DNA from: Haliotis cracherodii
Lineage: Eukaryota
DNA length: 64,000 nucleotides
Assembly (NCBI RefSeq): GCF_022045235.1
Contig: NW_027266267.1
Coordinates: forward strand, 2,232,001 to 2,296,000
Direction: 5' to 3'
Shown here: positions 21,481 to 61,517 of the stretch, one piece after another
Layout: each line of letters starts with the position of its first letter
Position numbering within the stretch: the first letter of the stretch is position 1
Translations under genes and position numbers: made by a program
The notes under the pieces: model-generated
The model's database searches: none
What the model was told of the DNA's origin: nothing
What the model saw: only the letters and a program-made list of their open reading frames with translations

Positions 21481-21632
21481 CTGAAAATGTAGACCCAAGA
21501 TTTATACGTAGGTTGGCTGGGTTGTCAAGTCAGTAGATGTTAACTAGTGTGTAATCATACATTTTATTCCCTTGTCTCTCGAATACCTTTACCTTCTAAA
21601 ACCATATGAACTAAAGAGCAGAAAAAAATGTG

Positions 21633-22145
21633 TGAGAGTGTACCTAACATGTTCAAAATATAAAGGAGTATCTACCTTAGAGGCTCACCATTAACAGGAG
21701 TATCTATCTTAGAGGTTCACCATTAACAGGAGTATCTACCTTAGAGGCTCACCATTAACAGGCGTATCTACCTTAGAGGCTCACCATTAACAGGAGTATC
21801 TACCTTAGAGGTTCACCATTAAAAGGAGTATCTACCTTAGAGGTTCACCATTAACAGGCGTATCTACCTTAGAGGCTCACCATTAACAGGAGTATCTACC
21901 TTAGAGGCTCACCATTAACAGGCGTATCTACCTTAGAGGCTCACCATTAACCGGAGAGTTTCCCCGATAGGTTCGCTATACACAGGAGAGTTTACCTGAC
22001 AGGTTCACTATATACAGGAAAGTTTACCTGACATGTTCACTATATACAGGAGAGTGTACCGGCCATGTTCACTATATACAAGGGGTGTCTACCTCATAGA
22101 TTCACGGTGTACAGGAGAGTTTACCAGACAGGTTCACTATATACA
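21633..22145. repeat. 32-bp minisatellite
   Basis: About 9 near-identical CAGGAGTATCTACCTTAGAGGCTCACCATTAA units flanked by diverged CAGGAGAGTTTACCTGACAGGTTCACTATATA-type units. Confidence 0.92.
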
Positions 22146-23633
22146 CAACAATTACATGGACAGCCCTACAACAACCCAGTCCTACATATGTAGCTGTGTT
22201 TAATGCTGTGACCTACTACACGCATGTACACGCTATATCTGCATGTAAACTCTCCTCACTATTGGGCAATTGATTTCTGACACATGCTTACATGTAAATA
22301 TACCAGTGTGCAGCATTACTGGCATGGCCGAGAAATAATTGTTACGATTTGGCTTAGTATTTCGCTGCAATGAAGATGCAACAGCACAGATACATTTGTA
22401 CAAAAGAAAACAATATAGGTATAATATATCATCAATATAAACATAACTACACTTCACGAAGGTGTGCTTTTTTCTGACAAAGAGATGCAGTTTGTTCCCT
22501 CAAAAACGTGTTCAGATGCACATTACAAGATCAACACGACTGAATCCGGATACAACAACATTTGCAAAAGTATTAGTGCTTAATGTTAATATCATCATTA
22601 TTTAATAGTGTGGTAGTGTTTCATATTCTAGTGTTTTAAACTTTATGCATCTGAGTAACAAGTTATTTAATGATGTTAATGCATGGATTCCCTACACATC
22701 AATAATCATGACGTCTTGAACAAAAAATGTAAATTTGAGAATTATAAGCAATGATTCAATACAAGAATACGATCGGAGCGCCAGCAGTGGCTATTACGAG
22801 TTATGTCCCTCCTACTGATAAATCAGATTCCGCCTCTCATATCACTTGCATTTTCATTTGCTTCAAACAAAATGGCGGCGCCCAGTCAAAACGATCTCGT
22901 CTCTAACCAAGATTTATATCGTAGTATGACATGTCTTACCTTGCAACCTTGTGGGGGCCCGGGGTAGAATGTAACCCCAGCATCCCATTGCTGGTCGTGA
23001 AAGGTCGGGGAACCAGTTTGCCGTGGGCTGCTTTCCTGTGTCGGCAGCGAACGGGAGTCTGGTGGTTGAGGGCACTGGCTCAAAGAGTAGCATCCTGTAA
23101 CTGTATTTGTGATGAGTTGGGTTAGTTCTCAAACAATAATCAGAAAAGTAAGGGAGTTCTTACTTTACTTAGAAAGAGCAAAGTCGAGGTTATCATGAGG
23201 CGTACTGAGAAGTACAGCACCATTCGTCTTCAAATTACAGTTTTCCACTCAGATCACAGTTGAAATCCCCTGTTACCTTGACATGTTCACGCCGCTCGGA
23301 AAGACCCTGACGTTTTTTGCATGAAATCAGAAAGTGAATGGGACAACCGTCTCCGTGACACTTTTGGATGAACGTACGCACAAGCAATAAAGAATTTGGC
23401 AGCAAGAAAGGAAATGTATTCTGTACTGCGAGATGACGTTACATCACGTAGCTGGACAATGCTTTTTTAAACACATACACGGTGATACCATGTGCAGATT
23501 CTCCTGCATTGAATTGATATCCTTGGAGGTCTCTTTCAATTTAATCGTTGATGTTGGTTTCTCTGAAACACAAAACCTGAACCACACCAACAAATTTATC
23601 TTTCTTCATATCTTCAAAATGAGTATTGAGTGA

Positions 23634-29031: not shown

Positions 29032-32000
29032 TGACTTTGATTTAAACAGTATTTTATTTTCATTAATGTTCAGATTTTACATTAAATAGCATTACAAAAT
29101 GGAAAAAGGATTAGCAAACAGGCCATAAAGGCCTATATTAATGCTTCTCCTAATAATGTACATCATACATGTAGATTGTAATGAAGTCTATAGAGCAGAC
29201 ATTAATGAGTGACACAACATGAAATAAAATGGAATGCAAGATACCAAATGCATTTTATATTCTTAAGTTGACACATAACTTACGTAAAGCGGTTTGTTTC
29301 AATGATGTAATTGTGAACTGATTTTATAATGTATTCATTGTCTGAGGAAGATGAATCTTCATTGCCGTGGAATATAGTATGTATGCTGAGCTGGTTAACA
29401 AAAAAGTATTTATCAATTCTAAACTTGGCATAGTGTGGACAAGATAGAGAAAAGCATCTTCTCTATTTAGGCCACATGGACAGATGGGATTATCAATCAG
29501 AAATCTGTCAAATAAATGTGATTTTAAATCACCACAACCTAGCCTAAGTCTAGATAAAATCACCTGACATTGCCACTGGCCATAACTAGCAAAAGATGTA
29601 AAATGTGCAGTAAGCTTAGTTTCTCTAGAAATTAATGCTTAAACCGAGATAAGGAATCTACATTTCTAATATTAATATCAAGTGCATTCCAAGCCTGTAT
29701 AACAGATGGCAAAAAAGATCGATTATACTGGGATAAGCGTCCAGTACTGGTCTGGAAGTCAATGTCGTCTGTCGGACAGTGAAAATAAACCTGTTTCCCT
29801 ATAAAGTTTTTTGTGACTGGTTCATCTTACTGCTCCACATATTGTTTGTAGAGCATCCAAGTGTAAATTTTCTAATAGTCTTACTTGTTCATTATTACAA
29901 TTATCCCAAATATTATCACAATAATCAAAAATAGGTAAAATAAAAGATTTGTACATGGTTTCGAGCGTTCTTTGATTTAGACGGTATTTCAGGCTACGCA
30001 AAACAATTAATTAATGGGCTCACTTTACGTACAATATATTCAATGTGTTTGTGCCATTTTCCATCTTCCTGGAATACAAGTCCTACTTCACTTACTTCAG
30101 GTATAAGAATATCATTCATTCGCAGAGGTAATTTAGGACTAGGATTAATTTTAGTGAAAATAACATGGCTTCCGTTTTGGAAGGACTAAATTTCACCTGC
30201 CATTTACTTGCCCAGTTTGATAAACATTCTAAATTACTATTCAATATAGCGGCTGTGGATTCAGTATCTTCAATAATTAGAAATAAAGATGTATCATCAG
30301 CAAAAAGTTTAATATTACTCGTTATCCCATGAGTCAGATCATTAATATAAATAAGGAATAACAGAGGTCCTAAAACTGAGCCCTGTGGCACTCCGGCTAG
30401 AACAGGTTTATAATTTGACATAAAGAGATTATTTACTACAGACTGTTGTCTATTACAAAGATAACTTCCAAACCAGTCCAGAAGATTATCCCCTATCCCT
30501 GTTGACTTTAATTTAACTAATAAGCCTTCATGCCAGACACGATCAAACGCCTTACTTATATCGCAAAATATGGCGCGAACTTCCTTTCCATCATCCAAGG
30601 CTTTGGAGATCACGTGATATAATTCAGTTAGCTGATAAACAGTTGAATCTCCAGGTTTGAATCCCGATTATGAAGTGGTTATGATATCATTATACAAGTA
30701 AAAATTGTAGACATGCTTAAATACGCATTTTTCAAATACCTTAGAAAGAGAAGTTGTCAGGGCTAATGGTCTATAATTATTACAGTCATGAACACTACCT
30801 TTTTTATGGATTGGAACAATAAGAGATGTTTTCCATTGACAAGGAAAGGAGGAAAGTCGTAGCAATAAATTGAACAGTAAAGTAATGGGAGCACATAGAG
30901 GTATAGCTAGTTTTTTTATTAGCATATTACCAATATTATCTGGACCTTTAGCTTTGGTAGTATTTAGACTTAATAAAATATCATGGACTTCTTTTTCAGA
31001 CAAGAGCAAGTCGTTAAGTTTATTTACCGGCTCATGTAAGTTATTAGTTTTCTTCTCAGGTTTTTCAACTTGGGCTTGTTGAATAAAGAAGTCATTAAAA
31101 GCCTCAGCAATATCACTGGGATGATCAACAACGTCTCCATTAATCATAATAGGAGGGGATTGTGTATTTAAATTTATTTTATGCTCTTTGAATTTTTTAA
31201 TTAAGCGCCACCATGATTTAGTACCACATTCTGAATGAATAGTATCATCTAATTACAAATCATAAGCGCGCTTAGCTTTCCTTACTTCAGTAATAACTTT
31301 GTTCCATGCTAATCTGAAGCAGTCCCAATCAATCTGTAAATTTCTTCTTTTAGCAGTTGATTTCTATTCCTCATCAGCTTTCGCAAGTGGCCATTCATCC
31401 AAGAATAATCCCCTGGTCGTACAACCACTTCTTTTTGGGGTATGTACAGATCTATCAACTGTAATATTTTTGAAGTAAATAGTGAAATAGACACGTCAAT
31501 ATCAGTGTGGTCAATAATACTTCCCCAATCAGTGGCAGCAATACAATCACTTAGGCCACTGTAGTAAGCATGGTTATAATCATATATAAATCGCTTAAAA
31601 GATTCCTTACGTGCCTTTCCAAACCTGAGGGAAACGAATACTGGACTATGATCAGTGCATACTGGAGGAAGAACACCTGATTCATTTACAATGCTATAAA
31701 CAGTGGTAAAGATGAGATCAAGCAAAGTACTAGTAGTATCAGTTACTCGTGTAGGTTCAGCAACAAGTTGTATTAGGTTGTAAAATAATTGTAAATATTC
31801 AATTTTGTCTAGTATATTAGCATTAAAGTCACCTACTACAATCATTTTAGAGTATCAATTAAGTCCCAGTAGTAGTTCCCGAGATCCCTTCTATAGAATG
31901 TACCAATCAACATTGACATAATTGACTTTAGATACTCTTCCTCCATGACATTCTTCTGAGATTTTACTAAGTTGTTTAGGTCTTGCAAACACCACTTTAT

Positions 32001-32861: not shown

Positions 32862-33262
32862 TTACTTACTTGACTTATCGGATGACAGGATTTCCACCAC
32901 CTTTTTATGTTTCCAGTGTCTTGCCAAGTCGGCGGCTGTCATGCCTTCGTTGTCTTTGGCGTTTATGTCCATCTTCTTCAGTGAGAGGATAAACTCCACC
33001 TTCTGCCTATCTCCTCTCATGCTGGCCAAGTGAAGAATATTTCGACCTTCACCGTCCACCAGTGTCGGATTGGCTCCTCCTTTCTTCACAAGGAACTTCA
33101 TGACAGTGAAATGACTATTCTCTATTGAAGCTCTTAATGGTGTAACCCCGTTCGATCCGGCGCCGTTCACATCCAGCCAATCCATGGCGGCCCTGACTGT
33201 TTGCAGGTCTCCGAAACGGCAGGCATTTATGAATTGGTCACGACTTGTGTCTCTTCGAGCCT
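32862..33262 (-). CDS. Ankyrin-repeat terminal exon (about 4 repeats)
   Basis: ACRFGDLQTV, GVTPLRAS, GRNILHLASMRG, GMTAADLA; acceptor ttctgttatag| at 33263. The upstream part of the listed ORF is probably intron. Confidence 0.88.
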
Positions 33263-33644
33263 CTATAACAGAAAAATGCTCTTTGAACACATGCATGTGG
33301 AATTTACATTCTAATATAGTCAATGTCCTAAAGCCATTATAGTTTTGTCTCCCTGCTAATAGGCTTGCACATCTCTGATGACGTTTTCCTTTCATGTTGT
33401 TTTCTATTCATTACGAACATGCTTCTCCTTCTGCTCTCACTTTGAAAATGAGTAAATCTCAAACAAATAATAGTAGAACAAATTGTAGGATACACAACTT
33501 GATTCAGTGATATTGTGTTCTGTTCTTTTCAAATACACCAGAGGCCAAGTGAAAATCGACAGTAAACGACCTGTGAAATTCAGAGCGAATGTCTCGTTTT
33601 CAACGATATTTCATGAATTGAGGATAGATGGGCAGACAGACAGA

Positions 33645-33870
33645 CATGTGTAATTGGTGTATGATGATATACATCAACTAAGCCAGCGAGCCTGACCACC
33701 CGATCCCGTTAGTCGCCTCTTACGACAAGCATAGTAGCCTTTTACAGCAAGCATGGGTTGCTGAAGACCTAGTCTACACTGGGCAGCCTAGTGGTTAAAG
33801 CTGGTGTCCTCCTCCGTTATATTGCTGGAATGTTGCTAAAAGTGGCGTCAAATCATACTCACTCACTAAC
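33645..33870. mobile_element. Adjacent SINE fragments (V-domain-type, minus; internally deleted family B, plus)
   Basis: 33645-33780 is a reverse-complement match to 63644-63912; 33781-33870 keeps box A and the (ACTC)n tail of 15411-15576. Confidence 0.75.
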
Positions 33871-34173
33871 CACAATTTTATGATAATAAGTACATATGAT
33901 GTTACTCTGTGGACTCCCATTTATGTTGTCACAACGTTATGGGCTGACGTCTATGGTTAGAAGATGATAAACATAACGTGTAATGCGAAAAATTGTATGT
34001 GATGCATTATCCTCATACGAAGAAGATAGGTGGAAACTGGGAGAGAATCTGGTCTGATACAGGTCAGTTCACTCTTAACTTATACAACATGTTTTATGTA
34101 AACTAGCACAAATGTATCCTCATAAGATCATAATCGGGGCGAATCCGGGATTCGAACTCATTGCCATCGGATA

Positions 34174-36029
34174 ACATTTGTAAGGGTAAGGCAACAGTGA
34201 CCCTAGGATATTATTTGGTGGGAATCCAAAGAGAATAACTGTAACTATTATTTTGAGAGAGCGTGTGATCAGCCTGCATTTGATTATATATGTAATGCAT
34301 ATACTTTGTAATTGTTTTTATGATTAAGATAATTAGTAAGTAATAGTTTTAACTAGATGATATATGAACATGAAGATGGTCACGCAAAGAACGTTTCGGT
34401 TTGCATTCAGGTGTAAAACATATTGAGCAATAATTATAATGTTACAAATCATGTAACTTCATACATACGCATCGAAGATGGCGGCACTTCCGTTTCCGGT
34501 GGCGCGCGCATCCAAGATGGCGACATTTCCGTTTCCGGGAGGCGTGCGCACCTCCAAGAGGACGCCACATCAGGTTCCGGGGAGGAGGCGGCCATAAGAA
34601 GCGCTCGTAAAATATCAAAATATCAAAATTAAAAGAAGCGCACGTTAAATCCTTAATGTCCATTTCTTTCTTTTTTTAAAGGGTAGTCAGGTGACTTTTG
34701 GAGGGTAGTCAAAGCAATGGATGCACGCGTTCTTTCGGGAGAGATGGGTGGCCCTGAAAAGGGCCGTTTCAGAGAAGAAGTAGATTACTTCCTCTCCCAC
34801 AAAGGGACTGTGCTACAAAGGCACGGATGGTCTGACATCTGTCCTTCAGGACAATGTTACAGTAGATGCACTGAAATGTGCCATCACGTGCCCTTGTGCC
34901 ATGCACATAGACTAGCAGGCACCCTTTGCACTTGTTGCATTGCCATGGAGGAATTTGTTCCAAATCCCAGCGGCACCCTTTGTACAGTGGCAAAGGGTGC
35001 GCAACTGGAACCAGCTCCAAATCATCATTTTCATCATTAGTCTGCATGCTGATGATGATCTCATGGAATGCAGTCTGAGTGGCTTCACAAAAAGAACTCA
35101 CACACTCACTGCATTCTATGAAATCAACCATGTATACAACTGTGTCTCTATACAACTGTATGAAGTGCCAGACCGACAGTCACAGTTACCTACCCTGAAG
35201 TGACATGTACCGAGTGCCACACTCAAGGTCACCCCCACTAATTCTGTCCGAAGATAAGCAGTCAAGATAAGCAGAAGACTCCCAAGGGCCCATGTTACAA
35301 CTGCCAAGTCTTGGGTCATTTCGCTGCAGATTGCCCAGATCCCAGTCGAAAGAAAACTTCAGCAGCGCCGTCAATGTCGACACATGTGACACAAGTGCTT
35401 CATCTCATAGAAGCTATGCATATCCACGCCCGTGCTCTAAAAGAATGCATCGCACAACTCCATGCATCACACCACGTCTAGGGAAAAGAAAACGGGACAG
35501 AAGCCCCTCAAGAAAGCACCCTTCAAAGCACCAACGACGTCACCAGTCTGAGGAGGAGGAAGAGGTGGAGGATGAAGAAGATAGATCATCTGAACAAAGT
35601 GACTAACGCATGGGACATGCTACATGTACTTCATTGTTTTTTCCAGTTTCCAATCGTTTCCAGTTTCCAATCGTTTCCAGTGTTCCAGTTTTCCTACAGT
35701 TTCCTGCCGTTTCCAGTTTGTTTTCCAACGGCCCTTTTCAGGGCCTCCAATCTCTCAAACCAAAACAAAGAACCCACCTCCTCCTCCTCCTTCCTCCTAC
35801 CAAATCCCTCCCTCCCTCCCTCCGCCACCTCCTCCCTCCACTACCACCACTTCTTTTTTTTTTTAAAAAAAGAAAAAAATGAACACGAAGGGTTTTACCT
35901 GCGCTTTTTTTAATTTTGATATTTTAACATTCTACGAGCGCTTCGTATGGCCGCCTCCTCCCCCGGAACCGGATATGGCGTCATCTAGGGCCCATCGGAC
36001 ATTCGAAACCTACCCCTTTACTCCAAATG
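34174..36029. mobile_element. Unclassified inverted-repeat-bounded element with degenerate cargo ORFs
   Basis: ~120-bp imperfect inverted repeats at 34555-34677 and 35865-35987; weaker outer inverted match CATTTG..AGGG(G)TA.G...CCCTAG; no transposase motif seen. Confidence 0.65.
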
Positions 36030-37486
36030 GAATGAACTTAACTTGATCATATGTATGTGAGGCAAAAAACAATGTACTTTTATGTTAATTTAATTTGATG
36101 AAACTTAATTTACTGTGGAAATTTGACAGAAAAGAGTGACAAATTCGCTTTGAAAACAGGTATTCTGGTTCCCGTATCAATGTAGGACGTGTGATATGAG
36201 GAGACAAAGCCAAGCTTAAACAGTTTGATATCCTCTTCAATAAAAAAACAGTCGACAAAAACATATGATATTATATGACTGGACATTGTGATTGTCTCTG
36301 ACGATTAGGTGTGCATTGTCTTATTACTGTGTGAATTATAAAACTGTTTATCACCTGGGTTTGGGGGGTCCTCTTGAGGCTGTAGTTCAACCGGAATAGA
36401 AAACAATTATTAAAAGACGAAACAGCTGTCCACGGTTTTGAGTGAAATGTATAGGTTGAATGTTAGTTGGTCAATCTGAATAATGGAAACACAGATGATG
36501 GCGTTTAAGAAATTGTTATGCTGCTGAATTGCAAAATATATGTGTGCCATTGTCTGCTATGAAAAAGTGACACGTTTCAAGCTCTCTGTTGTCTCATCAA
36601 GTTAAAATACATTCATAGTTGTTTCTACCCTTTTTTGACCTCTCCATTAAAATGTAACTGTATATGTCGCTGTTTCAAAATGTCTGCTGACTGACAACTG
36701 TTGATTTATTTCAGTGAATCTATACCTTCCTTCACAATTAATTATGTCAAAACCAACATATGCTGTTGTAATGCCTTTGTGACCCGAGTTACCGTACAGA
36801 ATGTGACCAATGTCAAAGCATGTTTATAAATGCCAGAAACGTTATCATAATAGCAACCAACATGAGACATTTAACTGTTGTCAACGGGATCGATGGATAC
36901 AACCTTACCTACGTTTACATATGCTGTCTTGTGTGTTGTTTTTAAACAACACTAGAAGATATATTTTATAACACTAGATATTGGTGACGCCATCTGCCAT
37001 GCGATTTCCAAAATCTAAATTGGTCTAGACGGGTGTGACATGTCACTAAGTTTCAGTGCAGTCAGCAAAAGTTGATGATAGGCTGCTATCATTCTGCATG
37101 TAATGCAAACACCCCTCAAATTTACAATTGTTACTGCAACAATACAATTTGCATTTAGTGGCATGAATGATAATCTGCCGTGGCAGGGTTAGTTTTGTTT
37201 TGAAAGTCAAAGGCAGCATGGTTTGTGCCTGGTGCAAGATTTTGAGTTCTTTTCTTGGTGCGATGTACGTGAAAGTGTTTCCCAGGGGTTTTACAATACG
37301 AGAATAAAGCTTCAGGATGAACACTATGGATCTTGGATGGATAAGGCTAACTTAAAAAACCCTGGATGTGACAGTCGTTATAATAATTTAAAAGAAAGGA
37401 CATCAGGTACCAATAGATGGAACAGATGCATTACTTGGGATATTTGTGAGATAAAGACTTAATTAGTGTTGTACGAGATAATTTAC

Positions 37487-40400
37487 CTTCTCCCCTGGCT
37501 CACTATAAAGGTCAACCAATGCCTTGGTTATGGCTGTGTATCTCTCGGTATCCATGTGGAGGTATCCAGGTAAGGCCTTCCGTCTGGCTACAGTTTCTAA
37601 GCGCTCTAGCTTCTCCTTAAACAGCTTCTCATCCTTCCACGTGGACGCAGGTACAACTCCATATACGACATCAAGTGACACACCTGTCTTCTCCTTGATG
37701 AAACCCATGATGCTTCTCGTCAGTTGGGCATTGTACTCCACTGCATGCTCCTGTTTGCCTCCGTCCTCTACAAATGTCAGGATGTGCAGTGGTTGTGTGG
37801 CTCTAATGATAGCCACATCACAGATGGACATGTTAGGTAGTTTGCGACATTCAAACTTGCCAATATGAGCCATTTGATGTGCAATGTAGGCCCAACCATC
37901 ATGTTGGTATAGAACGTTCTGGATTTCTCTTGAAATCACACCTACATCGTCACCGGGGTTCTGCAATAACACATCTACTTCGTCACTGGTGTTCTGCAAA
38001 CTGAGCTCCAAATTCGCCTTTGCAGAGTGGGGAAATATTGTGTGACCTGAAACAATAAAACTATCATTAACATTTTACTGAGTGGATGGGTTGTTGAAAG
38101 TAAAAGATGATCAATATTAATATACAATGAGCTACACGTCTATAGTAGTCAATCGACACATGATCTTCTAAAAATCCAAGAAAAGGTCTTTCAAAACAAA
38201 AAAGAACAGTATGAACCTGTATATATGTTATTTGTAGACCATGAATACCTCAGACATTTGTGTGCAAATTAACAGTAATCTAAACACACACACAACAAGG
38301 AATGCCTTAGATAATAAATCTTGTGTGAAACATTGACTACACTAGTTCAGGTTTGGAATTCAAAGACAATAAACTAAATGGAAATCAGAATGCTGGAATT
38401 TCAATTATTAGTATTCAGTGGGAGAGAAATGATTGAACTTTTTGGACACAATTTGATTCTACAAATGTACAACCAGACACCCGATCACGACCATGTTCAG
38501 TTAAACCTAATGATACGAAAACCTAATGAATGTTTAAAACCAATGGAGTCATAGATCTGGACATTGGCAGAACATAAAACACACAGTTACAAATGGTTTC
38601 ACCCGTCAATACACTTCAACATACGTCACATTAGACGATGATTGTAAAGGATTTTACCTTCTCCTACTAAAATGTCATGATTGTTATATGTTCATGTGTA
38701 TTCAAATTAGGTCATGTCAAGTCTCGGGACTTGTTACATTCAGTAGGGATATATACTCCATAATAATTATTCCCCTTAGCTCGTAAGGTATTCTCTAATC
38801 AACTTACCAGGATCTGTTGCCCTCTTGAGGTCTGTCTGATTAAGTATTAAGTTTGTTTCGACTTGTTGGTCGCTGATTTCTTCTGTAATCACCTTCAATC
38901 TGTTAACAGGATGCTCCAAATGCTTCTTAGCAGATTGGGGAAATATTCTGTGACCTGAAAGAATAAAACTATCATAAACATGGTCACATGGTATGCTTAT
39001 GTATCATAAAGATAGACCGTTCAAATCAAAAAAACAATCATGGGATATTTAATAGAAACATGAATTCCTCACCGTTTGTGTGGAGATTAACTGTAAGCTA
39101 CGTGCAGAGGAAATCACTAGACAATCACCCTTGGATTTGTTATGATAATCCTTAATTCCTCCCAGCTCATTAATTATTTTCTAATAAATAAACCGACAAA
39201 ACCTTTTCCATATCCAATAGAAATCCCTGCATAAAGCAGAGTCGATTGTATAATTCCGACTATATCATGAGCATGCGTTTATGAATAACTATCAAATAGT
39301 AATGATACCAGGTGTTCGCGAAAAGGCGAGCGTATCCTGGCCCACTGGTGGAACCTGTCACAAACACATGCAAAGGCAAGTCTATTGTTCACCTGAAATA
39401 AACATGAGAAACAAATGGTACAAGTCAAAATAGGGAATAGCATCAGTTTTGTCACTGATGCGTCAAATTTGGAAATGTCCTCCTCATGTCTAGCATAAAC
39501 GTTTTTTAAAGCTTTACCGAGGCCTTGAATGTTGTAACCCTTATCAAACAACTTCTGAGCAAGAGTCGCATGACACTCTTTGAGATATTTGAAGAAAGAG
39601 CATGCTCGATTGTATTTTAAAAGTTATGAAGGCTGAAGCTGCTGGAATATTTCTTGACATGAATGGAAAGTTGACTGTTGGATAGTTGAAGTCATCCTAC
39701 TTGTCTCCTATAATCCTAGTTCAGGTGGGTAAATCAGGGAATTGGCTATTTGATTGTTATTGAACGATGTTAGATCATCGATATACCTGAAGCTTATGTT
39801 AAACGTCTTGGCTAAATTACCTTGTTTTGAATGGCCAGTCAAAACAGAAATTCCGATTCATGTGCACAAAGAAACAGATCCGCAAGAAGGGGAGCACAGT
39901 TGGTGTCCCTGGGGATGCCTACTTCTTGGCTAAATGTCATACCAACAAATTCTATATAGATCCTACCAATGAGATGTTAAAAACTGATATAGTCGGAATC
40001 GTACAATCAATGTTTTTGGCAGATATTTCTTATGAATATGGAAAGGGTATTGCTGCTTTTATTTATGAACTCATATTTATTTATGACTGACCAGGTAAGA
40101 TATTCTCTGAACAACTTACCAGGATCTGTTGCCCTCTTGAGGGCTGTCTGATCAAGTATTAATCTGCTTTCTTCGATGTCAATTGCCATGGAGGGGAAAT
40201 CTGATATGGAACAAAACATAAGTTATTGCCAGAGATTTATTATGACCATGGAAAGGGTATTGCTACTTTTATTATGAACTCATATTCATTTATAACTGAC
40301 AATGATCTGTATCCTTGTTAGGTTCTGTCTGATCCAGTATTAATCTGCTTTCGTCTTTGTCAATTGCCACGGAGGGGGAATCTGATATAGACAAAACATA

Positions 40401-40791
40401 CGTTTGTGAATACAATGATAAACAGGTTGAATATATGTCATGAACATTCATAAACAGTAAATTCAATGACAGAGTTGATGCAAAGAATCTTAACAACGTC
40501 CCAAGTGATACACCAATGAAGTTCATGAATAATACCTGCATGAAGGGTCTCCTGGTCATCAGAACTTGACGTGGACTCATTTCCGTGGGCAAACAGGCTC
40601 TTTATGATTTCTTCATCAGACTGGTATGGACTTGATCCAAGAGAACTGCTGTCATCAGTTGACTCATCGTAAACCATCTGGGCTTCCTGAATATAATCTG
40701 AACGATGAATGTCACCAAAAGGAGTCTTGGATTCACCTGGCTCTTCGGACATGTCATCGTATATTATCGGGACTTCCTTCTTATCCCCCAT
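37487..40791 (-). CDS. Acidic/repeat exons plus Schlafen middle (linker) domain; predicted to splice to the ankyrin exon (exons 40791-40536, 40381-40301, 40200-40120, 38954-38808, 38046-37487)
   Basis: All junctions are GT-AG and phase 1; ICDVAIIRATQPLHILTFV...AVEYNAQLTRSI resembles the Schlafen linker motif (CDALLI...P..LYT...Y...A..LK). Confidence 0.68.
39300..39990 (-). mobile_element. Penelope-like retroelement RT remnant (Naiad-type) in an intron
   Basis: Fragments GTNCAPLLADLFL, FNISFRYIDDL, DK*DDFNYPTVNFPFMSRNIP on the minus strand; heavily deleted. Confidence 0.75.
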
Positions 40792-40839
40792 GCTTCAAAT
40801 GATTTCAAAATAAAGTAAGCATCTAAAACTTGTACAGGT

Positions 40840-41892
40840 TTACATTAATCTTTGTAACCATTCATTTTTGTCCATTCTGCGAATTTGACCGTTTTCAATC
40901 ACGTGTGTTCTCGGTCCACGACTATCATAGAAAACAACACCTTCAACACACTTCACAGCCACCTCCAGAACAACTTTGTGACGTTCAGTTTGATGATTGT
41001 GAAATCTAATAGCAATCAGGTCAGGAGGGACAGCAGTGAACGTGTTCTCACTTCGATTCAATACTACACAGTCTTGTAGCATTGACTTGAGTTTTTTTTC
41101 TAATTTTTCCTTGGCCACTTTTAACTCAAATCCATGTACATCAGGAATAATTGTTTCATAGGGGTCAGTTTTCCCTGATTTCTTCTCACCTATTCCAAGA
41201 TAGTAGGATCCGCCATCAGGAATCTTTGACATAGCAGTTAAGTTATCCTTTAATTTAAATTGATTCCACAGTTTCTCCACAAATGTGTCGGCATTTTGTT
41301 GTATCTTGTCAGTGTCCGGGTATTTAAAGCCTTTTAACTGAATGTGAATATTTTCATGTAACTGTTGACGGTCATTTGGTATTCCCTTAAGCACAGGCAC
41401 AGAAGGTGTGCGCAACTGTGATCGCACTGTGAGTAGTTGTTGTGTTGTGGGGTTCACATTCTCGTAATCCTTCCCTAGCTTTGTATTGAAATCTGCAGTA
41501 GCTACACCTGTGACTGCTTCAATGCGTATGTGAATAAAATCAGCACTGTCTGCACAGTCCTCCAAGATATCCTGTAACCACTGACGTCTGTACGTGTTGG
41601 CGTAGACTTCTCCGGCTTCCAGCAGATCAGTCACTATACTGCCTACAACCTTGTCAAAGTAGTCCAGACATCTGTCCCAAGGTTCTGTTCCATTTACATG
41701 AACCAACAAAACACCACCACCACTGTTGCGTAATGCTGATAGTCTTTTAAGAAGTTTTTTGCGTGTCTCCTTCCTTTCTTCTGACTTCTTTAAATATATT
41801 GCCCGCTCTGTGTGGATTGAAAGTAGTTCGTGTTCAGCACTTTGTTTCCTGTAAAAAGTGTTAACCTTCTTGCATGCATCGCAACTGTGCAT
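40840..41892 (-). CDS. Schlafen core (AlbA_2-type RNase fold) protein, intronless ORF of 350 aa from the first ATG
   Basis: LSALRNSGGGVLLV; HENIHIQLK; NLTAMSKIPDGGSYYLGIGE; VHGF; VLEVAV..GVVFY..GP..H.IENGQI..M...EWLQRLM, collinear with the vertebrate SLFN N-terminal domain. Confidence 0.85.
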   Translation of the reverse strand: MHSCDACKKVNTFYRKQSAEHELLSIHTERAIYLKKSEERKETRKKLLKRLSALRNSGGGVLLVHVNGTEPWDRCLDYFDKVVGSIVTDLLEAGEVYANTYRRQWLQDILEDCADSADFIHIRIEAVTGVATADFNTKLGKDYENVNPTTQQLLTVRSQLRTPSVPVLKGIPNDRQQLHENIHIQLKGFKYPDTDKIQQNADTFVEKLWNQFKLKDNLTAMSKIPDGGSYYLGIGEKKSGKTDPYETIIPDVHGFELKVAKEKLEKKLKSMLQDCVVLNRSENTFTAVPPDLIAIRFHNHQTERHKVVLEVAVKCVEGVVFYDSRGPRTHVIENGQIRRMDKNEWLQRLM

Positions 41893-42569
41893 GTTTCTCA
41901 ACACTCATGTAGAATTCACAACATCCGTGCATGTCCAGTAATAATCTGGTACAGACAATAGTCTGTAATGTTCACAACAGGTGTGTTTGGATCACAACAG
42001 TCATGCAAAGATCAATGCAGTCTTGTGTAAATGGTAGATCTCGTGATACAGATCCCGCTCTGTGTACATTAACAGTATCTCGGTGTTTTGTTGCCGGTAT
42101 TTTGTTTTAACATTATTACACCAAGGGCAACCTTGCATGTTTCTCAATAATCTTGTAACATCCCAAACAGCGTTGCATGTCTGTTAACACGTTGGTGTAC
42201 CCCACAATAGTTTCGTTGTGTTGGATTGTCACATTTCTCACGCTCAAAGCAGTGCAGTCTTGTGTCACTCAGGTTTTAACTGATTTGTCTGGCTTGATTC
42301 ACTCGTCTTACACAATATTCTTGAATTATAACTATATGGACCAATGCCCTGAAACCAGAAACGTACACTGAGACAAACGCCGTGATGATGGTTCAGGTAA
42401 GTATTGACCCATTTGGGTTTGTTATTGAACTTGTCCTTCCCTGTATGAACCCGGATGCAAATTGATTCTATTGCTATTTTATAAGTCAAAGATATATTTT
42501 CAATAATTGAAACCTATAGTTGTTTGAGTCCCTATCAACACATGATAAACCTGGAAAAACGTGTAAGAT

Positions 42570-43340: not shown

Positions 43341-43714
43341 AATTCACATAGGAATCTAATCAACAACAGTTGGCTTTAACTATCACATGTATGCCTGCAC
43401 GTCTTAAGCAGGCTTGTAGTGATTTACAAAAAAGTAAATATTTAGATGTTTTCATTGAGCAATAGTTTTGTTGGTTCATGCTGATTGATCTGTTTCACGC
43501 AAAGATTTCGGTTGTATTCACTGTTTTGACATAGAGACACAAAGACACAATCCAGCGCATTGTGGCAAATGTTTGAAGATGGTGACATCGATTCATGTGG
43601 CAACGTTCGAATGATAGAATTACTGACAACAAACCAATCCTTTAAACTGTAGGCAATACTGACACCTGATTCACCAACACGGCAATTGCATGGACTGCTC
43701 AACAAACCAGCACA

Positions 43715-46700
43715 ATAGGGTCAGGGATAGGAATAGGGATGGGAATGGGATGGGGATGGGGATGGGGATAGGGATGGTGATGGGGATGGGGAAAGAGATA
43801 GGGATGGGAATAGGGATGGGAATAGGGATGGGGATGGGGATAGGGATAGGGATGGGGATGGGGATAGGGATGGGGATGGGGATAGGGATAGGGAGGGGGG
43901 TGGGGATAGGGATAGGGATGGGGATGGGAATAGGGATGGGGATGGGGATAGGGATAGGGAGGGGAATGGGGATAGGGATAGGGATGGGGATGGGAATAGG
44001 GATGGGGATGGGGATAGGGATAGGGATGGGAATGGGGATAGGGATAGGGATGGGGATGGGGATAGGGATAGGGATGGGGATGGGAATAGGGATGGGGATG
44101 GGGATAGGGATAGGGATGGGGATGGGGATAGGGATAGGGAGGGGGGTGGGGATAGGGATAGTGATGGGAATAGGAATGGGAATAGGGATGGGGATGGGGA
44201 TGGGGATAGGGATAGGGATGGGGATAGGAACTGGGATGGGGACGGGAATGGGGATAGTGATAGGAATGGGGATGTCGATTGGGATTGAGATGGGGATATG
44301 GATGGGGATGGGAATAGGGATGGGGATAGGGATGGGATGGGGATGGGGATGGGAATAGTCATGGGAATAGGGATAGGCATAATGATAGGGATGGGGATGG
44401 GGATGGGGATGGGGATGCGGATAGGAATGGGAATGGGGATTGGGATGGGGATGGGGATGGGGATGGGAATAGGGATGGGGATAGAGACTGGGGTTGGGAA
44501 AGAGATTGGGATGGGGATGGGGATCGGGATGGAGATGGGGGTTGGGAAAGAGATTGGGATGGGGAGGAGATGGGATGGGGATGGGGATAGAGATGGGGGT
44601 GGAGAAAGAGATGGGGATGGGGAGGGGATCTGGATGGGGATGGGGATGGGATGTGGATGTCGATGGGGATGTGGATGGGGATGGGGATCGGATGGGGATG
44701 TGGATGGGGATGTGGATGGGGATGGGGATGGGAATGGGGATAAGGATAGGGATGGGATGGGGATGGAAATGATGATATGGATAGGAATGGGGATGGGGAT
44801 GGGGGTAGGGATTAAAATGGGATTAGGAATAGGTGATGAGGATAGGGATGGGGACGGGGATAGGGATGATTATGGTGATAGGTATGGGGATAGGGATGGG
44901 AATGGGGATGGATATGGGGAAAGGGATAGAAATGGACATTGGGATGGGGATAGGGATAGGCATAGGGATAGGAACGGGGATGGGGACGGGAATGGGGATG
45001 GGGATATGAATGGTGATGGGAATGGGGATAGAGATGGGGATGGGGATGGGGAGAGGAATAGGGATGTCGATTGGGATGGAGATGGGGATATGGATGGGGA
45101 TGGGGATAGGAATGAGGATAGGGATGGGCATGAAGTTGAGGATGGAGATGGGCATATGGATAGGGATGGGGATGTGATTGGGATTAGTATGGGGATAGGG
45201 ATGGGGATAGGGATAGGGATAGGAAAATTGATGGGGATGGGGATAGGGACTGGAATGGAGATAGGGATGGGGATGGAGATGGTGATGGAGATGGGGATAT
45301 TGATAGGGATGGAGATGGGGATAGACATGGAGATGGGGATAGGGATGGAGATCGGGGATAGGGATCGGGATCGGGATCAGGATGGGGATGTGATGGGGAA
45401 AGGGATAGGAATAGGAATGAGGATGGGGATGGGGATGGAGATGGGGATAGGGATAGGGAAAGGGATGGGGATGGGGTTGATCAGGATAGAGATGGGGATT
45501 TGGATGGGGATAGGGATGGGGATGGAGATGTGGATGGATACGGGGATATAGATAGGGATGGGGATTGGGATGGAGATGGGATGGGGATAGAGATGGGGAT
45601 GGGGATAGAGATGGGGATGGGGATAATGATGGGGATGGGGATGGGGATGGAATGGAGATGTGGATGGAGATGGGGATATGGATAGGAATGGGGATGGGGT
45701 AGGGATTAGATTGGGAATAGGGATAGGTGACGGGGATAGGGATGAGGACGGGGATAGGGATGGGGATGGTGATAGGTATGGGGATAGGGATGGAAATGGG
45801 GATGGAGATGGGAAAAGGGATAGAAATGGACATTGGTATAGGGATAGGAACGGGGATGGAGACGGGAATGGGTATAGTGATAGGGATAGGAATGGTGATG
45901 GGGATGGGGATAGAGATAGTGATTTGGATAGGGATAAGGATAGGGATAGGAACGGGGATTGGAACGGGAATGGGGACAGTGATAGGAATGGTAATGGGGA
46001 TGGGGATAGAGATGAGGATGGGAATAGGAATGGGGATGTCGATTGGGATGGAGATGGGGATATGGATGGGGATGGGGATAGGAATGGGGATAGGGATGGA
46101 GGAAGAAATGAGGATGGAGATGGGGATATGGATAGGGACGGTGATTGGGATTGGAATGGGGATAGGGATGGGGAAAGGGATGGGAATAGGGATAGGGATA
46201 GGGATGGGAATATTGATGGGGATATGAATGGTCATTGTGATGGGGATGGGGATAGGGATGGGGATGGGGATAGGGATGGGGATGGGGATAGGAATCGGGA
46301 TGGGGATGGGAATAGGGATAGATATGGAGATGGTGATAGGTATGGGGATTGGGATGGAGATGGGGATGGGGACAGGGATAGGAACTGGGATGGGGACGGG
46401 AATGGGGATAGTGATAGGAATGGGGATGTCGATTGGGATTGAGATGGGGATATGGATGGGGATGGGGATAGGAATGGGGATAGGGATGGGGGTGGATATG
46501 AGGATGGAGATGGGGATGGAGATGGGGATATGGATTGGAAGGGGGATAGGGATGGTGATGGGGATAGGAATGGGGATAGGGATGTGGGTGGAGCTGAGGA
46601 TGGAGATGGAGATGGAGATGGGGATATGGATTGGAATGGGGATAGGGATGGTGATGGTGATTGGGATTGGAATGGGGGTAGGGATGGGGAAAGGGATGAG

Positions 46701-48727
46701 GATAGGGATTGGAATGGAGATAGGGATGGAGATGGAGATGGTGATGGAGATGGGGATATTGATAGGTATGGAGATAGGGATAGAAATGGAGATGGGGATA
46801 GGGATGGAGATCGGGGTAGGGATAGGAATGGAGATGGGGATAGGGATCGGGATCGGGATCGGGATTGGGATAGTGATAGCGATGGGGATAGGGGTAGGGA
46901 TGGGGAAAGGGATGGTAATGGGGATAGGAATGGTGATGGGGATAGGGATGGAGATAAGGATATGGATAGGGATGGGGATGGAGATGGGGATAGGGATATG
47001 GATAGGGATAAGGATGGGGGTGGAGATGGGGATAGGAATGGAGATAGGAATAGGGAGGGAGATTGGGATGGGGATAGGGATGGAGATGGAGATGGGGATG
47101 GGATAGGGATGGGGACGGGTATGGGGATGGGGATGGGACAGGGATTGGGATGGGGATAGGGATTGGGATAGGGATGGGGACGGGGATAGGGAGGGGGATG
47201 GTGATAGAGATGGGGATAGGGATTGGAATGGTAATGGGGATAGGGATAGATATGGGGATAGGGATTGGGATTGGGATGGGGATGGGGATTGGGATACAGA
47301 TGGGGATAGTGATACAGATGGGGAAAGGGATGAGGATGGGGATAGGAATGGTGATTGGGATAGGGATAGGGATAGGGATAGAGATGGGGATAGGGATGGG
47401 GATGGGGATAGCGATGGTGATGGGGATAGGGATATGAATGGTGATTGTGATGGGGATGGGGATAGAGATGGGGATGGGGATAGGGATTAGGATGGGGATG
47501 GAGATGGGATAGGAGGGGACGGGGATTGAGATGGGGATGGGGATGGAGATGGGGATAGGGATAAGGAAAGGGATAGGGATGGGGATTGGGATAGCGATGG
47601 TGATGGGGATAGGGATTGTGATGGGGATAGAGATGGAGATGGTTAAAGGGATGGGGATTGGGATGGAGATGGGATAGGAGGGGACGGGGATTGAGATGGG
47701 GATGGGGATGGAGATGGGTATAGGGATAGGGATAGGGATAGGGAAAGGGATAGGGATAGGGATGGGGATTGGGATATAGATGTGATGGGGATAGGGATTG
47801 GGATGGGGATGGGGATTCGGATGGGGATGGGGATGGTGATGGGGATAGGGATGGGGATGGGGATGGTGATAGGGATTGGATAGAGATGGGAATAGTGATT
47901 GGTATGGGAACGGGATAGGGATATGAATGGTGATTGTGATGGGGATGGGGATAGGGATGGAGATGGTTATAGGGATGGGGATTGGGATGGAGATGGGATA
48001 GGAGGGGACGGGTATTGAAATGGCGATGGGGATGGAGATGGGGATAGGGATAGGGATAGGGATAGGGATAGCGATGGGGATGGGGTCGGCGACGGTGACG
48101 GGGATGGGTATAGGGATGTGGCTGGGGCTTGGGATTGGGATGGAGATGGGGAAAGAGATGGGGATTGGGATATGGGTGGGGATTGGAATGGAGATGGGGA
48201 TAGGGAGGGGGGCGGTGAAGTGGATGGGCATGGGGATAATGATTGGGATGGGGATGGGGATAGTGATTGGGATGGGGATGGGGATAGGGATGGGGATTGC
48301 AATGGATATGGGGGTAGGGGTTGGGATGGGGATGCAGATGGGATAGGGACGGGGACGGGGGCTAGGACGCTTGGGCTAGGAATATGGATAGGGACAAGGA
48401 GAGAGATAGGGACACGGATATGGTTAGGTATAAAAATATAGGTAGAGACAGGGATAGGGATAGGGATATAGTTACGTTTAGGGATACGAATATGGATAGG
48501 GATAGGGATAAGAATAATGATAGGATTAGGAAAAGGGATAGGGATAGGAATGGGGACAGGCACAAGACAGGGACAGGGACAGGGATAGGAAAAGGAAAAG
48601 GAAAAGGAATAGGCATTGGGATAGGGATCGGGTTAGGGTTACGGATAGGGATAGGGACAAGGATAGTGACAGGGACAAGAATACGAATAGGGATAGGGAT
48701 AGGGTTAAGAATAGGGATAGGAATATA
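43715..48727. repeat. 5-kb degenerate (GGGATG/GGGATA)n simple-repeat array
   Basis: Continuous purine-rich hexamer array with extreme G-strand skew. Confidence 0.97.
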
Positions 48728-49901: not shown

Positions 49902-52900
49902 TTACCCAAATCTCTTTGTATGACTTATAAACATTTGCACTGCTTTAAAGATGTGTTGATTTTCGATAATGGACAAACATTCATTTCCGTTTAACATCAA
50001 ATTTAAATCTAATTTAGCATTTTTGTTCACGGCGTTCTGTAAAATGTCCCGAATTATTATTAACATAGTTTTTCTTTGGTGGACGTACGATGGACACTTT
50101 AATAAATAATGATATGCGTTTTCACATGGATCACCACATTGACATGTTGGATCACATTTTACCTCTATTCTGTATAAATCATAATTTAACTGGCATTTCA
50201 TGTATCTTAATCTAGTATGATAAATATTCAACTTTCTAACACCATAGGAAAAATATGGAGGTGCAATGACTTGCTCTTTTCGTATGTATGTCTTGAATTG
50301 GGATCTAGATGTACAATTTCTACCTGCTGCAGGAATAGTGTTCCATAACCTTACAGTTGATGGAATAAAAGAACACGTTGAGTGTTTTAATCTATTATAT
50401 GGAATCTCAATATTGTCTGAATTTCTTAAATTATATGATATATTTGAACCTACAGTGGTTGGTACAATGTCTTTAAGGTAAGTTGGGGCAGTATTACTTT
50501 GTATTTTGTAGAACAAACATAGCTTGCGTTTCTTTCTTCGTTCTATTAACGTTTCCCATCCTGTTTCATAATACAGATGTGTGTGCGAAGTATACTTTGG
50601 GAGCCCAGTAACTACTCTGGCAGCTTCTAGTTGGAGATTTTCTAACTGAGTTGATAATTCTATATTACACCCATCCCACACTTCACACGCATATTCGAAA
50701 TGGGGTCTTATGAAGATTGTATATACTTTATTTAATGTATTTCTGTTCAATATGAATTTTAATTTTCTCATTGAATTTATCATTTTTGATGTTGACTTAA
50801 TTATGTTCTCTACGTGGCAGGACCATTTTCCGTTTGATGCAAACGTTATACCCAAATGTTTATGATTTTGAACATTCTTAACTTTACATTCATCAAAGTA
50901 CAAGGTAATGAGGTCTGATTTATCTTTTAAGGAAAATATAACCGCTTCTGTTTTATCTGGGTTGTATTTGATTAACCAGCGTTTTGCCCAGTTACACAGC
51001 TTGCTCAGATTTAAATTTAGAGTTGATTCAACAAGTTGATTGTCTGGTGAAGAAAAGCCGAGTGCTGTATCGTCAGCAAAGAGTCTTGTTATGCAATCTA
51101 ATTCATCAGCAATGTCGTTAACAAACACAATGAATAAAAAGGGACCTAACACCGACCCCTGTGGAACGCCAGCCTTCAAAATCCTTGGCTTGGATAGGGC
51201 CCCGCTTACAAACACTGATTGAGTACGATTGCTTATGTAACTGGACAGCCATTCAAGTAAATTCCCTTTTATACCATACATTTCTAATTTGTACATAAGC
51301 CCTCTATGCCAGACACGATCAAATGCTTTTGACACATCGCAAAAAACCATGCAATATTTTTCTCTATTATCTAAAGATATACAAATTTGATTATACAATT
51401 CAATTAATTGATGGACAGTGGAATGGCCTTTCTGAAAGCCCGACTGGTATTTAAATAACAATTTATTGTCATGAAAGTAGTTATAAAGATGCTTAAATAC
51501 AACTCTTTCAAATACTTTGCCAATACAACTAATGAGCGATATTGGTCTGTAATTTGTCACAACTGAATGATCTCCTTTCTTATACAATGGCATGACATGC
51601 GCTCTTTTCCATTCTGTTGGATATGCTTTTAAAGCCAATGAATGATTGAATAACATACATAAAACAATACTAATGCGGTTTACTGTTTTCTTTAATAGGT
51701 TGTTACTTATTCTGTCTGGACCAGATGCCTTGTTAATTTGAAGACATTTTATAACGTCAGATATTTCATTTTCTGAGACAGTTAATTTGTCAAAAATACT
51801 CTTAGTGCGTTGATTGAAATATGGTAATTCTTCCCGTTCTTCTGTTAGGGTAGATATGGATTGGAAATATTCATTTAATCTCTCTGATTTTTCTAAATCG
51901 GAAAATATAGTGGGACAGTCATCGGTATCTTGTTTCCTTAACGGGGGGATGCTCGTAGATGTTCCATTGTTTTTGACGACATATCTTACTAATTTCCAAT
52001 ATGATTGTTTATTTACTATATATAGTTCCGAAAGAAATTCATCGATGTTAGAATAGAACTTTTCTTTCGCATAACTTTTCATGTTGTTGACTTTATTGCG
52101 TTGTTTTTTGTATGCTATAATATCTGTCTCCTTATTACTCCTTTTTGATTTCTTTCGTAACCTATTACGTATCCTACACTCCTTTCTTAAATGTGAATCA
52201 AACCATGGTTTGTCATTTGGTCGAATAGTGACAATTTTAGATGGAATACATTGTGTTACAAAATCATTCAATCTTTCATACAACACTTCACACATATCAT
52301 CAACATTTGTACATTCATTAAATAATACAGACCAATTGGTAGTGTTTATGAGATCATTCAATTTAACAAAGTCACCTTTGTTATAACATAAAACCTTGCG
52401 TTTATAAGCTATCTTGGTGCATATTTGTGTGTCCATTTCCATATAAGTACCTCTGTGATCAGATATTGTACTATCGAAGTCGATCACACCACTGACCTTT
52501 ACATCAACATCTTCACTAACAATGATTGGATCTAAAAGTGTGCTAGATTTAGAAGTGACTCTGGTGGGCTCATCAATTACATTCCTTAAATTTTTTCTGT
52601 GTAAAATTTCGTTTATGTAATTTTTCCTGTTAGATAATAAATTTTCATTTAAATCACCGACAATCACCATTTTACTAGATATATCCAATGCATCCTCGAT
52701 AGAAGTATCTAACCGACTCCAAAACTGTATAGAATTGTGTTCTGGTCTGTAAACAGCACAGAGTAATAAGGCCCTTGAGGAAGAAATATTTTTATCCATA
52801 TACTTTCATCAGTAATATTTTCTAGTTCGTGCATTCTCTTGTATGTTAAACACTTAGTGATGTATATCATAACCCCTCCCCCAAAAGCATTTCTATCTTT

Positions 52901-53380
52901 CCGTAATGGATTATGAAATGATTGCCACTGTAAAGTTTCATTACCTACAGATTCATCCAGATGTGTTTCAGTGAAACAAACTACATCATATTCAGACAAA
53001 TATTCTGCAAGATACCTTTGCTTATTACGGACACTCCTGGTGTTTAAATGGAAGATCGACAATGAGTGGTCAAGATTAGTTACATCACCGGTCAGTGGGC
53101 CAGGATTAAGTTCAACGTCCCCTGCAAGCTGTATTAACAATAGGAGTACGAGAATTACATTTACATTGCCGAGATAAGCCTGCAGAACACAAAGGCACAA
53201 TCGAGTGTTACAAGCTTTAACTTCTAGTGATAAAATATAATGCATTATGTCCAGCTCGTTCAAAAGAAACTTTGTGATGGAAGATTTGCAGATAAACAAT
53301 TGACACAACCGGTTAGAAGACTTTACAACACAGTTGAACACCCCGATCGCAACGCGATACTGAGATATATCGTTACCCAT
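49902..53380 (-). pseudogene. LINE ORF2: 2A-like peptide, APE endonuclease and reverse transcriptase, one frameshift at ~52772
   Basis: GDVELNPGP; HLNTRS, FTETHL, GGGV, YRP, VGDLN, SDH; NYRPISL, DVSKAFD, GVPQGSVLGP, LFADD; C-terminal CQCG...HYLLKC. Confidence 0.95.
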
Positions 53381-60990: not shown

Positions 60991-61517
60991 TCTATTTTGA
61001 TGATGGTGGATATCAGATTTAGATACCTTACCTTTGATATTTTAATCAAAACAAGCATTCTTTTCCTGCTGTTTATGGTATTTTTTTGGACGCAGGATAT
61101 GACTTATTATTTGTCACTTTTTGTGGCACATGACAACAGTCTTTTGTCAATTAAACACGTCTTCGTGCAATATTGTCTTTCGCACTTTTAACAGATGCAC
61201 TCAATTTGATGCATGAGCTTTTTGATGCAAGTGGTGATCCTTACCAAACGTTTAGTAGTATAATTGATTTCATTCACGAGATAGCAACATCTTTTGGATA
61301 CGTACATGTAGTAGATCCAGAAATTAACATCTTAAATATATATGTATAAAATTATTGTCAAAGTGTTGAAGATAAAATGTCAAGGTCACTCCTTTTGGAA
61401 TAAGTATTAACACATGATCAGTAGTATGTTTTGTTGTTTGTGATGGTCATTACAGTATACTATAGAGTCTGTTCTTGTGTAATTCCGCCTGTACCGATTA
61501 AATGTATCGTGTTTCAT

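Follow-up and report, generated by a model that had tools for sequence, protein, structure and literature searches.

The stretch analysed here, hereafter the window, comprises 64,000 nucleotides (nt) of Haliotis cracherodii DNA (G000:C4:2232001-2296000) and carries on its minus strand a module of two consecutive open reading frames (ORFs) with predicted Schlafen domains. An open frame spans 40840-41904(-), and its first ATG, at 41892, gives a protein of 350 amino acids (aa), ORF1, which ends in ...EWLQRLM at a TAA stop codon (40842-40840). ORF2 opens with an ATG at 40791, 48 nt past the stop of ORF1, in the same frame and beyond a second in-frame stop (TGA, 40797-40795), as a preliminary description of the sequence had read it. 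Inspection by eye revealed no AATAAA within the 48-nt spacer. RNA evidence comes from Logan contigs from four runs, placed on 36340-42339 and assembled from short reads; we treat these contigs as RNA and not DNA because intron bins are at zero depth. Runs are cited below by labels such as X1, paralogous loci as L001 onward and protein relatives as P0001 onward. The exons of ORF2 were searched and folded one by one. The parts of the module are as follows:

41893-42339 (-): transcribed leader 5' of ORF1, at least ~450 nt; X1 contigs cover 41985-42339 and 41969 downwards
40840-41892 (-): ORF1, predicted free-standing intronless Schlafen core, 350 aa, TAA at 40842-40840 (open frame, family profile and structure model)
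40792-40839 (-): inter-ORF spacer of 48 nt with the second in-frame stop, TGA at 40797-40795; kept in an RNA contig (X1 record 3)
40536-40791 (-): ORF2 exon 1, 256 nt, with the start ATG and an acidic Ser/Asp/Glu-rich N-terminus; donor confirmed by the RNA joint from 40536 to 40200
40301-40381 (-): duplicate 81-nt mini-exon (exon 2 of the preliminary description), skipped in RNA; weak donor GTCAGT
40120-40200 (-): ORF2 mini-exon of 81 nt, used in RNA (piece 40118-40200 of X1 record 3; tblastn of P0016 and P0017)
38808-38954 (-): ORF2 exon of 147 nt, a hybrid duplicate (X1 record 3, X4 record 16; repeat families D1 and D4)
37487-38046 (-): ORF2 exon of 560 nt, predicted Schlafen linker ("GTPase-like", middle) domain (fold comparison; RNA joints at both ends)
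36355-36379 (-): microexon of 25 nt, peptide PQEDPPNP plus one base, phase 0 to 1 (RNA joint from 37487 to 36379; loose end reads the ankyrin exon)
32870-33262 (-): ankyrin-repeat exon of 393 nt, 131 codons, phase 1 to 1 (Pfam Ank_2; microexon joined to this exon in X1)
18236-23107 (-): five further putative ORF2 exons with a P-loop GTPase of possible IFI44-like type and a terminal TGA (tblastn of P0016, P0017 and P0018)

ORF1 is a predicted Schlafen core

Taken alone, the ORF1 protein falls below the Pfam cut-off for PF04326 (E = 0.08) and reaches E = 0.52 against SLFN11. A profile of 16 family members (A1) searched against PDB sequences matched the N-domain of pig SLFN11 (7fex, E = 6.7e-7) and further matched SLFN14, Slfn13 (5yd0, a chain named 'Schlafen 8' in its sequence record), SLFN12 and SLFN5, and 12 of the 16 members themselves match PF04326 (best E = 2.3e-5). 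The AlphaFold (AF2) model of ORF1 (predicted local distance difference test, pLDDT, 75.7) is closest to the N'-domain of SLFN13 (Z 16.4, root-mean-square deviation 4.5, 274 of 326 residues aligned). Z values of 10-16 are reached by 15 SLFN entries, ahead of the SAMD9 tRNase at 9.6 and unrelated folds at ~5. The last residue of the model, 354, aligns to chain residues 333-352 of the SLFN entries (349 in SLFN13), that is, to the vertebrate core boundary. Profile and model thus identify ORF1 as a true but distant Schlafen core ending at that boundary, and so bear out the preliminary description, which had placed the end of an intronless core there, at 40840.

The same description had called this protein an RNase core, and here fold and activity have to be separated. 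The catalytic motif of Schlafen nucleases is Ex4ExK together with a third carboxylate in the C-lobe (PMC13056530). ORF1 lacks it and has Ex4QxK (E184, Q189 and K191 in 354-aa numbering), a placement made by alignment to family members that retain Ex4ExK and not by residue-level structural superposition; E240, at the GxxE position, occupies the place of the vertebrate third carboxylate Asp. The Schlafen core fold stands, while nuclease activity of this copy appears doubtful because Gln replaces the catalytic Glu. Ex4QxK occurs in 32 of 51 sampled paralogues and Ex4ExK in 17, which argues that the change is old and conserved and does not reflect decay.

Two side observations concern the N-terminus of the core. 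A near-invariant C-x2-C pair in the abalone cores (ORF1 residues 8 and 11, ~41883-41872) could be part of a metal site, one that is not discussed for vertebrate cores. In the leader, ~250 nt upstream of ORF1, lies a short decayed look-alike of the N-terminal coding sequence of ORF1 (42020-42145(-); start, C-x2-C, TER...), which may be a partial duplication now acting as an upstream ORF.

ORF2 joins a predicted Schlafen linker to further domains

AG/GT ends and lengths fit an ORF2 gene with exons at 40791-40536 (256 nt), 40381-40301 (81), 40200-40120 (81) and 38954-38808 (147) and likewise at 38046-37487 (560) and 36379-36355 (25), with an acceptor at 33262 and consistent phases throughout. Exon 1 carries a conserved SSLGSSPYxSDEE motif, and annotated paralogue proteins start at the equivalent ATG. 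Its acidic segment might, as the preliminary description suggested, imitate nucleic acid. The mini-exons described earlier as repeated are true duplicates: 40120-40200 and 40301-40381 are tandem copies with a 181-nt period and 81% identity, and the 147-nt exon (38808-38954) resembles exon 5 at its 5' end and the mini-exon at its 3' end.

The 560-nt exon had been proposed to encode the Schlafen middle domain. The AlphaFold (AF2) model of its product (pLDDT 79.7) retrieved only SLFN14, SLFN12, SLFN5 or SLFN11 among the top 13 Foldseek matches, and in VIA-align model residues 7-186 scored Z 10.9-13.1 against SLFN12 387-553, SLFN14 386-567, SLFN5 369-559 and SLFN11 389-580, as compared with Z 5.3 for the next unrelated fold. 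By its modelled fold, the exon is a Schlafen linker domain (SLFN middle domain, residues ~370-580), in agreement with the proposal. Sequence methods give weak signals for this relationship, which is drawn from fold comparison: the window exon has no match to PF21026, five of 16 relatives match weakly (best E = 0.0016) and P0023 reaches E = 3e-5 (24.1 bits versus a cut-off of 27), while a profile built from the linker alignment drew a blank among PDB sequences and a single-sequence PDB search with the linker exon gave chance-level uS12 matches only.

In a search of 1.84 billion representative proteins, the product of the 560-nt exon matched 26. In 25 of these the linker domain lies ~30-150 residues from the protein's own N-terminus, the exception being P0023 (451-551), and no Schlafen core domain was found in the ten that were scanned, P0023 included. 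Among the 26 are P0016 (97% identity to the exon product), P0017 (89%) and P0018 (88%). P0016 and P0017 begin at the equivalent ATG; the microexon peptide is identical in P0016 and reads PQEDPQNP, with one substitution, in P0017. After this peptide P0017 has ankyrin repeats, which are absent from P0016, and a P-loop domain follows in all three.

The ankyrin exon of the window matches Pfam Ank_2 at E = 4.9e-15 (56.3 bits versus 27.3), and Ank_4, Ank_5, Ank and Ank_3 pass too. A consensus donor (A/GTAAGT) lies at 32869, six bases ahead of the stop codon (32864-32862) that closes the 516-aa model drawn up for ORF2 in the preliminary description (256+81+81+147+560+25+401 nt). With 393 nt, phase 1 to 1 and a donor just before that stop, the exon is to be seen as a frame-neutral optional cassette. 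The model keeps its splice ends and phases; its second exon (40381-40301) is skipped in RNA and its end at 32862 is not the end of the gene, so that it represents a truncated isoform at best.

Farther downstream, tblastn of P0017, P0016 and P0018 found five exons in the window with approximate limits 23107-22940, 21310-21083, 20624-20484, 19317-19162 and 18583-18239. All five have open frames and splice-like AG/GT flanks, the last ends in a TGA and the Walker A motif GPGRAGKSS is intact in the exon at ~21.2 kb. For the equivalent part of P0018 the best Atlas cluster is "interferon-induced protein 44-like" (score 0.97, 212 of 256 features), and this part has no Pfam match and no match to PDB sequences; we regard the IFI44-like assignment as a lead, not a proof. 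The earlier suggestion that ankyrins replace the helicase of vertebrate Schlafens thus holds in part: an ankyrin exon is present, as an optional cassette only, and the gene appears to continue to an IFI44-like GTPase.

An extra exon that follows the microexon in P0016 (VSGEAEPGVS..., and in P0017 with one substitution) has no copy in the window, and the contigs of runs X3 and X8 whose loose ends read VSGEAEPGVS... after the microexon are probably from paralogues. Two further observations touch the GTPase exons. The 9.8-kb intron ahead of them holds reverse-transcriptase fragments (RVT_1 at 30119-30613(-)), and the last GTPase exon has a second copy on the other strand, at 61514-61810(+), which shares 82% identity with P0017 residues 655-745 and is probably a fragment of another partner gene.

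RNA contigs span both ORFs

One contig of run X1 (record 3; 1829 nt, one mismatch) is unbroken from 41969 to 40536, through ORF1, both stop codons, the spacer and exon 1 of ORF2. It then splices from 40536 to 40200, from 40118 to 38954 and from 38808 to 38046, all with GT..AG introns. The first of these joints passes over the duplicate mini-exon 40381-40301, which is skipped in X1 and X4, both runs covering that stretch, and is probably decayed or rarely used. A second X1 contig (record 1) has the joint from 37487 to 36379 and a loose end at 36355 that is identical to 30 letters from 33262 onward. Joint and loose-end match together confirm the 25-nt microexon (36379-36355) and the join from exon 38046-37487 to the ankyrin exon, both of which had been predicted from the letters of the sequence.

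Within an ORF2 intron, an interspersed repeat at 39140-39540 reaches RNA-contig depths of 500-1370 in each of the four runs, with numerous irregular joints. This repeat is an abundant transcribed element and not part of the gene.

A large family of paired loci

Of at least 117 core matches in the genome, ~110 are intact, and nearly every match is one open frame of 350-440 aa, uninterrupted by stops. Among H. cracherodii, H. rubra, H. asinina and H. rufescens, fifteen relatives of 349-393 aa were compared, and all end 0-25 residues past EWLQ; the 51 sampled paralogues end likewise, just past this motif. The preliminary description had called for such a comparison of stop codons among paralogues, and its result is clear: the position of the core stop is common to all relatives, which excludes private stop mutations. 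It also disposes of the suggestion, made in the same place, of a broken Schlafen-ankyrin fusion, in which a once-continuous gene was interrupted by private stops and survives as a decaying pseudogene. Such a relic would fit the high ratio of nonsynonymous to synonymous substitution rates (dN/dS) of the core (0.76 against the closest paralogue), the replaced catalytic Glu and the failure of protein searches to return the window's own ORF1 protein, which may therefore be unannotated. It is extremely improbable given a stop that all relatives from four Haliotis species have in common with the 51 sampled paralogues, intact paralogues in such number, an ORF1 that is intact over 350 codons and transcribed, a Gln conserved in 32 of 51 paralogues with no private lesion, and a frame relation between the two ORFs that varies among copies (below).

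Against close paralogues generally, dN/dS is 0.46-0.76 for the core and 0.34-0.54 for the linker exon, and dS of the linker is ~4x lower than dS of the core between the same loci (L001/L002: 0.034 versus 0.144). These values point to gene conversion of the linker, or else to a mosaic past, along with a fast-evolving core.

Cores and linkers are paired across the genome. Sixty-six of 68 genomic linker-exon matches lie 1-10 kb downstream of a core match on the same strand, involving 59 distinct cores; by contrast, a core lies downstream of a linker match in only four cases and on the opposite strand in one. In ten closer paralogues the partner ATG follows the core stop after 44-81 nt, and in L002 and L003 after 48 nt, as in the window. 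At L002, L003, L004, L007, L026, L027, L030 and L031, with core identity down to 32%, an annotated partner Met lies 11-189 nt after the core stop. The C-terminal domains of the partners vary and include ankyrin repeats, RING/B-box, a STAND NTPase accompanied by numerous ankyrins and a GTPase of putative IFI44-like type. Among publicly annotated proteins, L006 encodes the H. cracherodii core P0001 without a single difference, and P0016, P0017 and P0020 map at 100% to L002, L003 and L007.

These pairs might be two neighbouring genes with their own promoters, whose overlapping transcripts were merged by the assembler and whose pairing reflects a duplicated cassette and co-regulation; in variants of this explanation the 3' untranslated region of ORF1 runs into ORF2 exon 1, or transcription of ORF2 starts inside or upstream of ORF1. 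The RNA evidence consists of assembled contigs, which cannot exclude merging, and the annotation has separate proteins for the core (P0001) and the partners (P0016, P0017 and P0020). On the other side, spacers of 11-81 nt are too short for a terminator plus a promoter, so that the transcripts would have to overlap anyway, the window's spacer shows no AATAAA to the eye, and order and strand are strict at 66 of 68 loci. We consider neighbouring genes rather unlikely.

The frame relation between ORF1 and ORF2 is not conserved, being 0, 1 or 2 in 6, 3 and 3 of 12 copies. Because it varies, read-through or a frame-keeping mini-intron is disfavoured, and with it the idea of a single fused protein resembling the vertebrate core-linker chain and made by way of a small intron (GT 40843 to AG 40793, 51 nt), stop-codon read-through or frameshifting. 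The idea draws on the shared frame of this copy, on a GTAAAC that overlaps the stop codon with an acceptor-like TTTGAAG before the ATG, and on the frame-neutral removal of 51 nt. It is very unlikely, since the spacer is unspliced in the RNA contig, there are two in-frame stops to bypass, the equivalent mini-intron is not a multiple of 3 in L004-L006, and in the linker proteins described above the linker stands near its own N-terminus (25 of 26) and no core domain precedes it in the ten scanned. The mini-intron itself (40843-40793) is rejected on the grounds of the unspliced spacer and the variable frame.

Some core paralogues differ in their ends from the intronless copy of the window. In 32 of 52 sampled paralogues (L007-L064) the open frame lacks a Met both before the point where its alignment to the window core begins and in the next 12 residues, so that the start codon of many copies may lie in an exon farther upstream, in contrast to the window copy. 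Four others sit in much longer open frames of 605-684 aa (G000 C67:27005103, C13:1057476, C67:50217959 and C4:31728476), in which the core may be naturally fused to another sequence. A profile search for relatives beyond Haliotis returned Haliotis only; its word index and length window limit the search, and the result says nothing about other molluscs.

Comparison with known systems

Vertebrate Schlafens of subgroups II and III (SLFN12, SLFN5, SLFN11, SLFN13 and SLFN14) share with the abalone module the two-lobed core fold and its boundary (Z 13-16), the linker fold (Z 10.9-13.1) and the order of core then linker. They are single chains, whereas the abalone core and linker are separate ORFs, divided by stop codons and the 48-nt spacer, with ~130 acidic residues ahead of the linker. 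The abalone module also lacks the SF1 helicase and instead has the ankyrin cassette and putative IFI44-like GTPase, its active site reads Ex4QxK plus Glu as against Ex4ExK plus Asp in vertebrates, and sequence identity is only 12-16%. Subgroup I (core only, mouse Slfn1/Slfn2) shares a free-standing core of ~340-380 aa, and some of its members are without nuclease activity and bind or protect tRNA. It differs in that the abalone core is followed within tens of bases by an ORF for a linker-carrying partner; subgroup I Schlafens are not known to have a linker partner.

The abalone family likewise resembles prokaryotic Schlafen defence nucleases, in which cores with a highly conserved Ex4(E/D)xK are fused to diverse sensor domains (PMC13056530), in that a core is paired with sensor or regulator modules of varying kinds. 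An immune function is suggested by how much these modules differ across the family. Prokaryotic sensors are fused in one chain, whereas the abalone modules stand on a second protein that starts with a eukaryotic linker domain. In IFI44 and IFI44L, the closest GTPase-like proteins to the C-terminus of ORF2 paralogues by language-model features (and with a Walker A motif in the window), the N-terminal half is a TLDc domain, in place of which the abalone proteins have a Schlafen linker.

As to gene organization, conserved dicistronic animal genes such as Drosophila stoned or Adh/Adhr (PMC4528330) likewise carry two long non-overlapping ORFs per transcript with a short spacer. The abalone arrangement differs in extending over dozens of paralogous loci and in splitting what is elsewhere a single protein. 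In the literature searched, no description of a split or dicistronic Schlafen was found, and the only mention of Schlafen in molluscs concerned an annotation up-regulated in the gills of mussels (PMC7772429). The public records of the abalone family all read "uncharacterized protein".

Other features of the window

Outside the module, the ~5 kb at 43700-48600 have a G-over-C skew of 0.93-0.95, a GC content of ~0.53 and long overlapping ORFs on both strands, which suggests a G-rich satellite or low-complexity array. A LINE-like element at 49902-53380(-) consists of a 965-aa ORF with RVT_1 and an upstream Exo_endo_phos ORF. At 8936-12805(-), an ORF encodes a type-B DNA polymerase of the protein-primed kind that also has an Endonuclease VII domain; it adjoins a C2H2 zinc-finger ORF and fits a previously noted Polinton at 2.6-8.9 kb.

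Discussion

Taken together, the locus is probably a member of a large family of Schlafen genes in abalone, each with two ORFs that belong to one transcription unit. That unit would carry ORF1, the 350-aa core, and 48 nt downstream the spliced ORF2; in the ORF2 product an acidic N-terminus would precede the Schlafen linker, with an IFI44-like GTPase at the C-terminal end and the ankyrin cassette, where included, between the two. Core and linker would then be separate proteins from the same locus and a shared transcript, and the ORF2 linker may dock in trans on the core, in the way that SLFN5/11/12/14 pack linker and core against each other within a single chain. Docking of this kind could link a core that binds tRNA or rRNA to a sensor or regulator module that differs from paralogue to paralogue: ankyrin and GTPase in the window, RING/B-box or a STAND NTPase at other loci. 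The setting would most likely be innate immunity, and the Ex4QxK core of this copy may bind RNA without cutting it, or cut it poorly.

Several points weigh against this reading. A contig that spans two genes does not prove one molecule, as an internal promoter or overlapping transcripts would look alike. Of the two readings in the preliminary description, that of a two-component, possibly bicistronic system is the one that finds support; the paired ORFs are now seen on one spliced contig and across the genome, and their presence on one molecule depends on short-read assembly. ORF2 would have to be translated after an ORF1 of 350 codons, and the use of the 23-18 kb exons in this gene copy is proposed from homology. 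A complex prediction of core and linker domain gave a score of 0.00, with the partner fold uncertain in a run, and speaks neither for nor against binding. Gln stands in place of the catalytic Glu in ORF1, and the fast evolution of the core may include relaxed constraint on this copy.

A bolder version of the two-ORF interpretation is offered tentatively, as a possibility that we hold to be less probable than not: the family would consist of operon-like, obligately dicistronic immune modules, in which core and linker partner come from one mRNA and assemble in trans, interchangeable C-termini such as ankyrin plus IFI44-like GTPase, TRIM-like RING/B-box or STAND NTPase serve as sensors or switches permitting the core to act on tRNA or rRNA, and cores with Gln serve as non-cutting RNA-binding subunits.

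Schlafens are single-chain antiviral tRNA/rRNA nucleases whose linker domain is without a clear job. A systematic split of core and linker, with partners that carry different sensor-like domains at dozens of loci, would offer a natural experiment on the role of the linker in docking, dimerization or regulation. If true, the arrangement would be a rare conserved dicistronic organization in a mollusc, and a modular split-Schlafen immune repertoire would have no counterpart in vertebrates. It would also bring into view a large, fast-evolving and so far unnamed gene family. Abalone are both farmed and endangered and are hit by herpesvirus and withering disease, which makes this family a candidate component of their innate defence.

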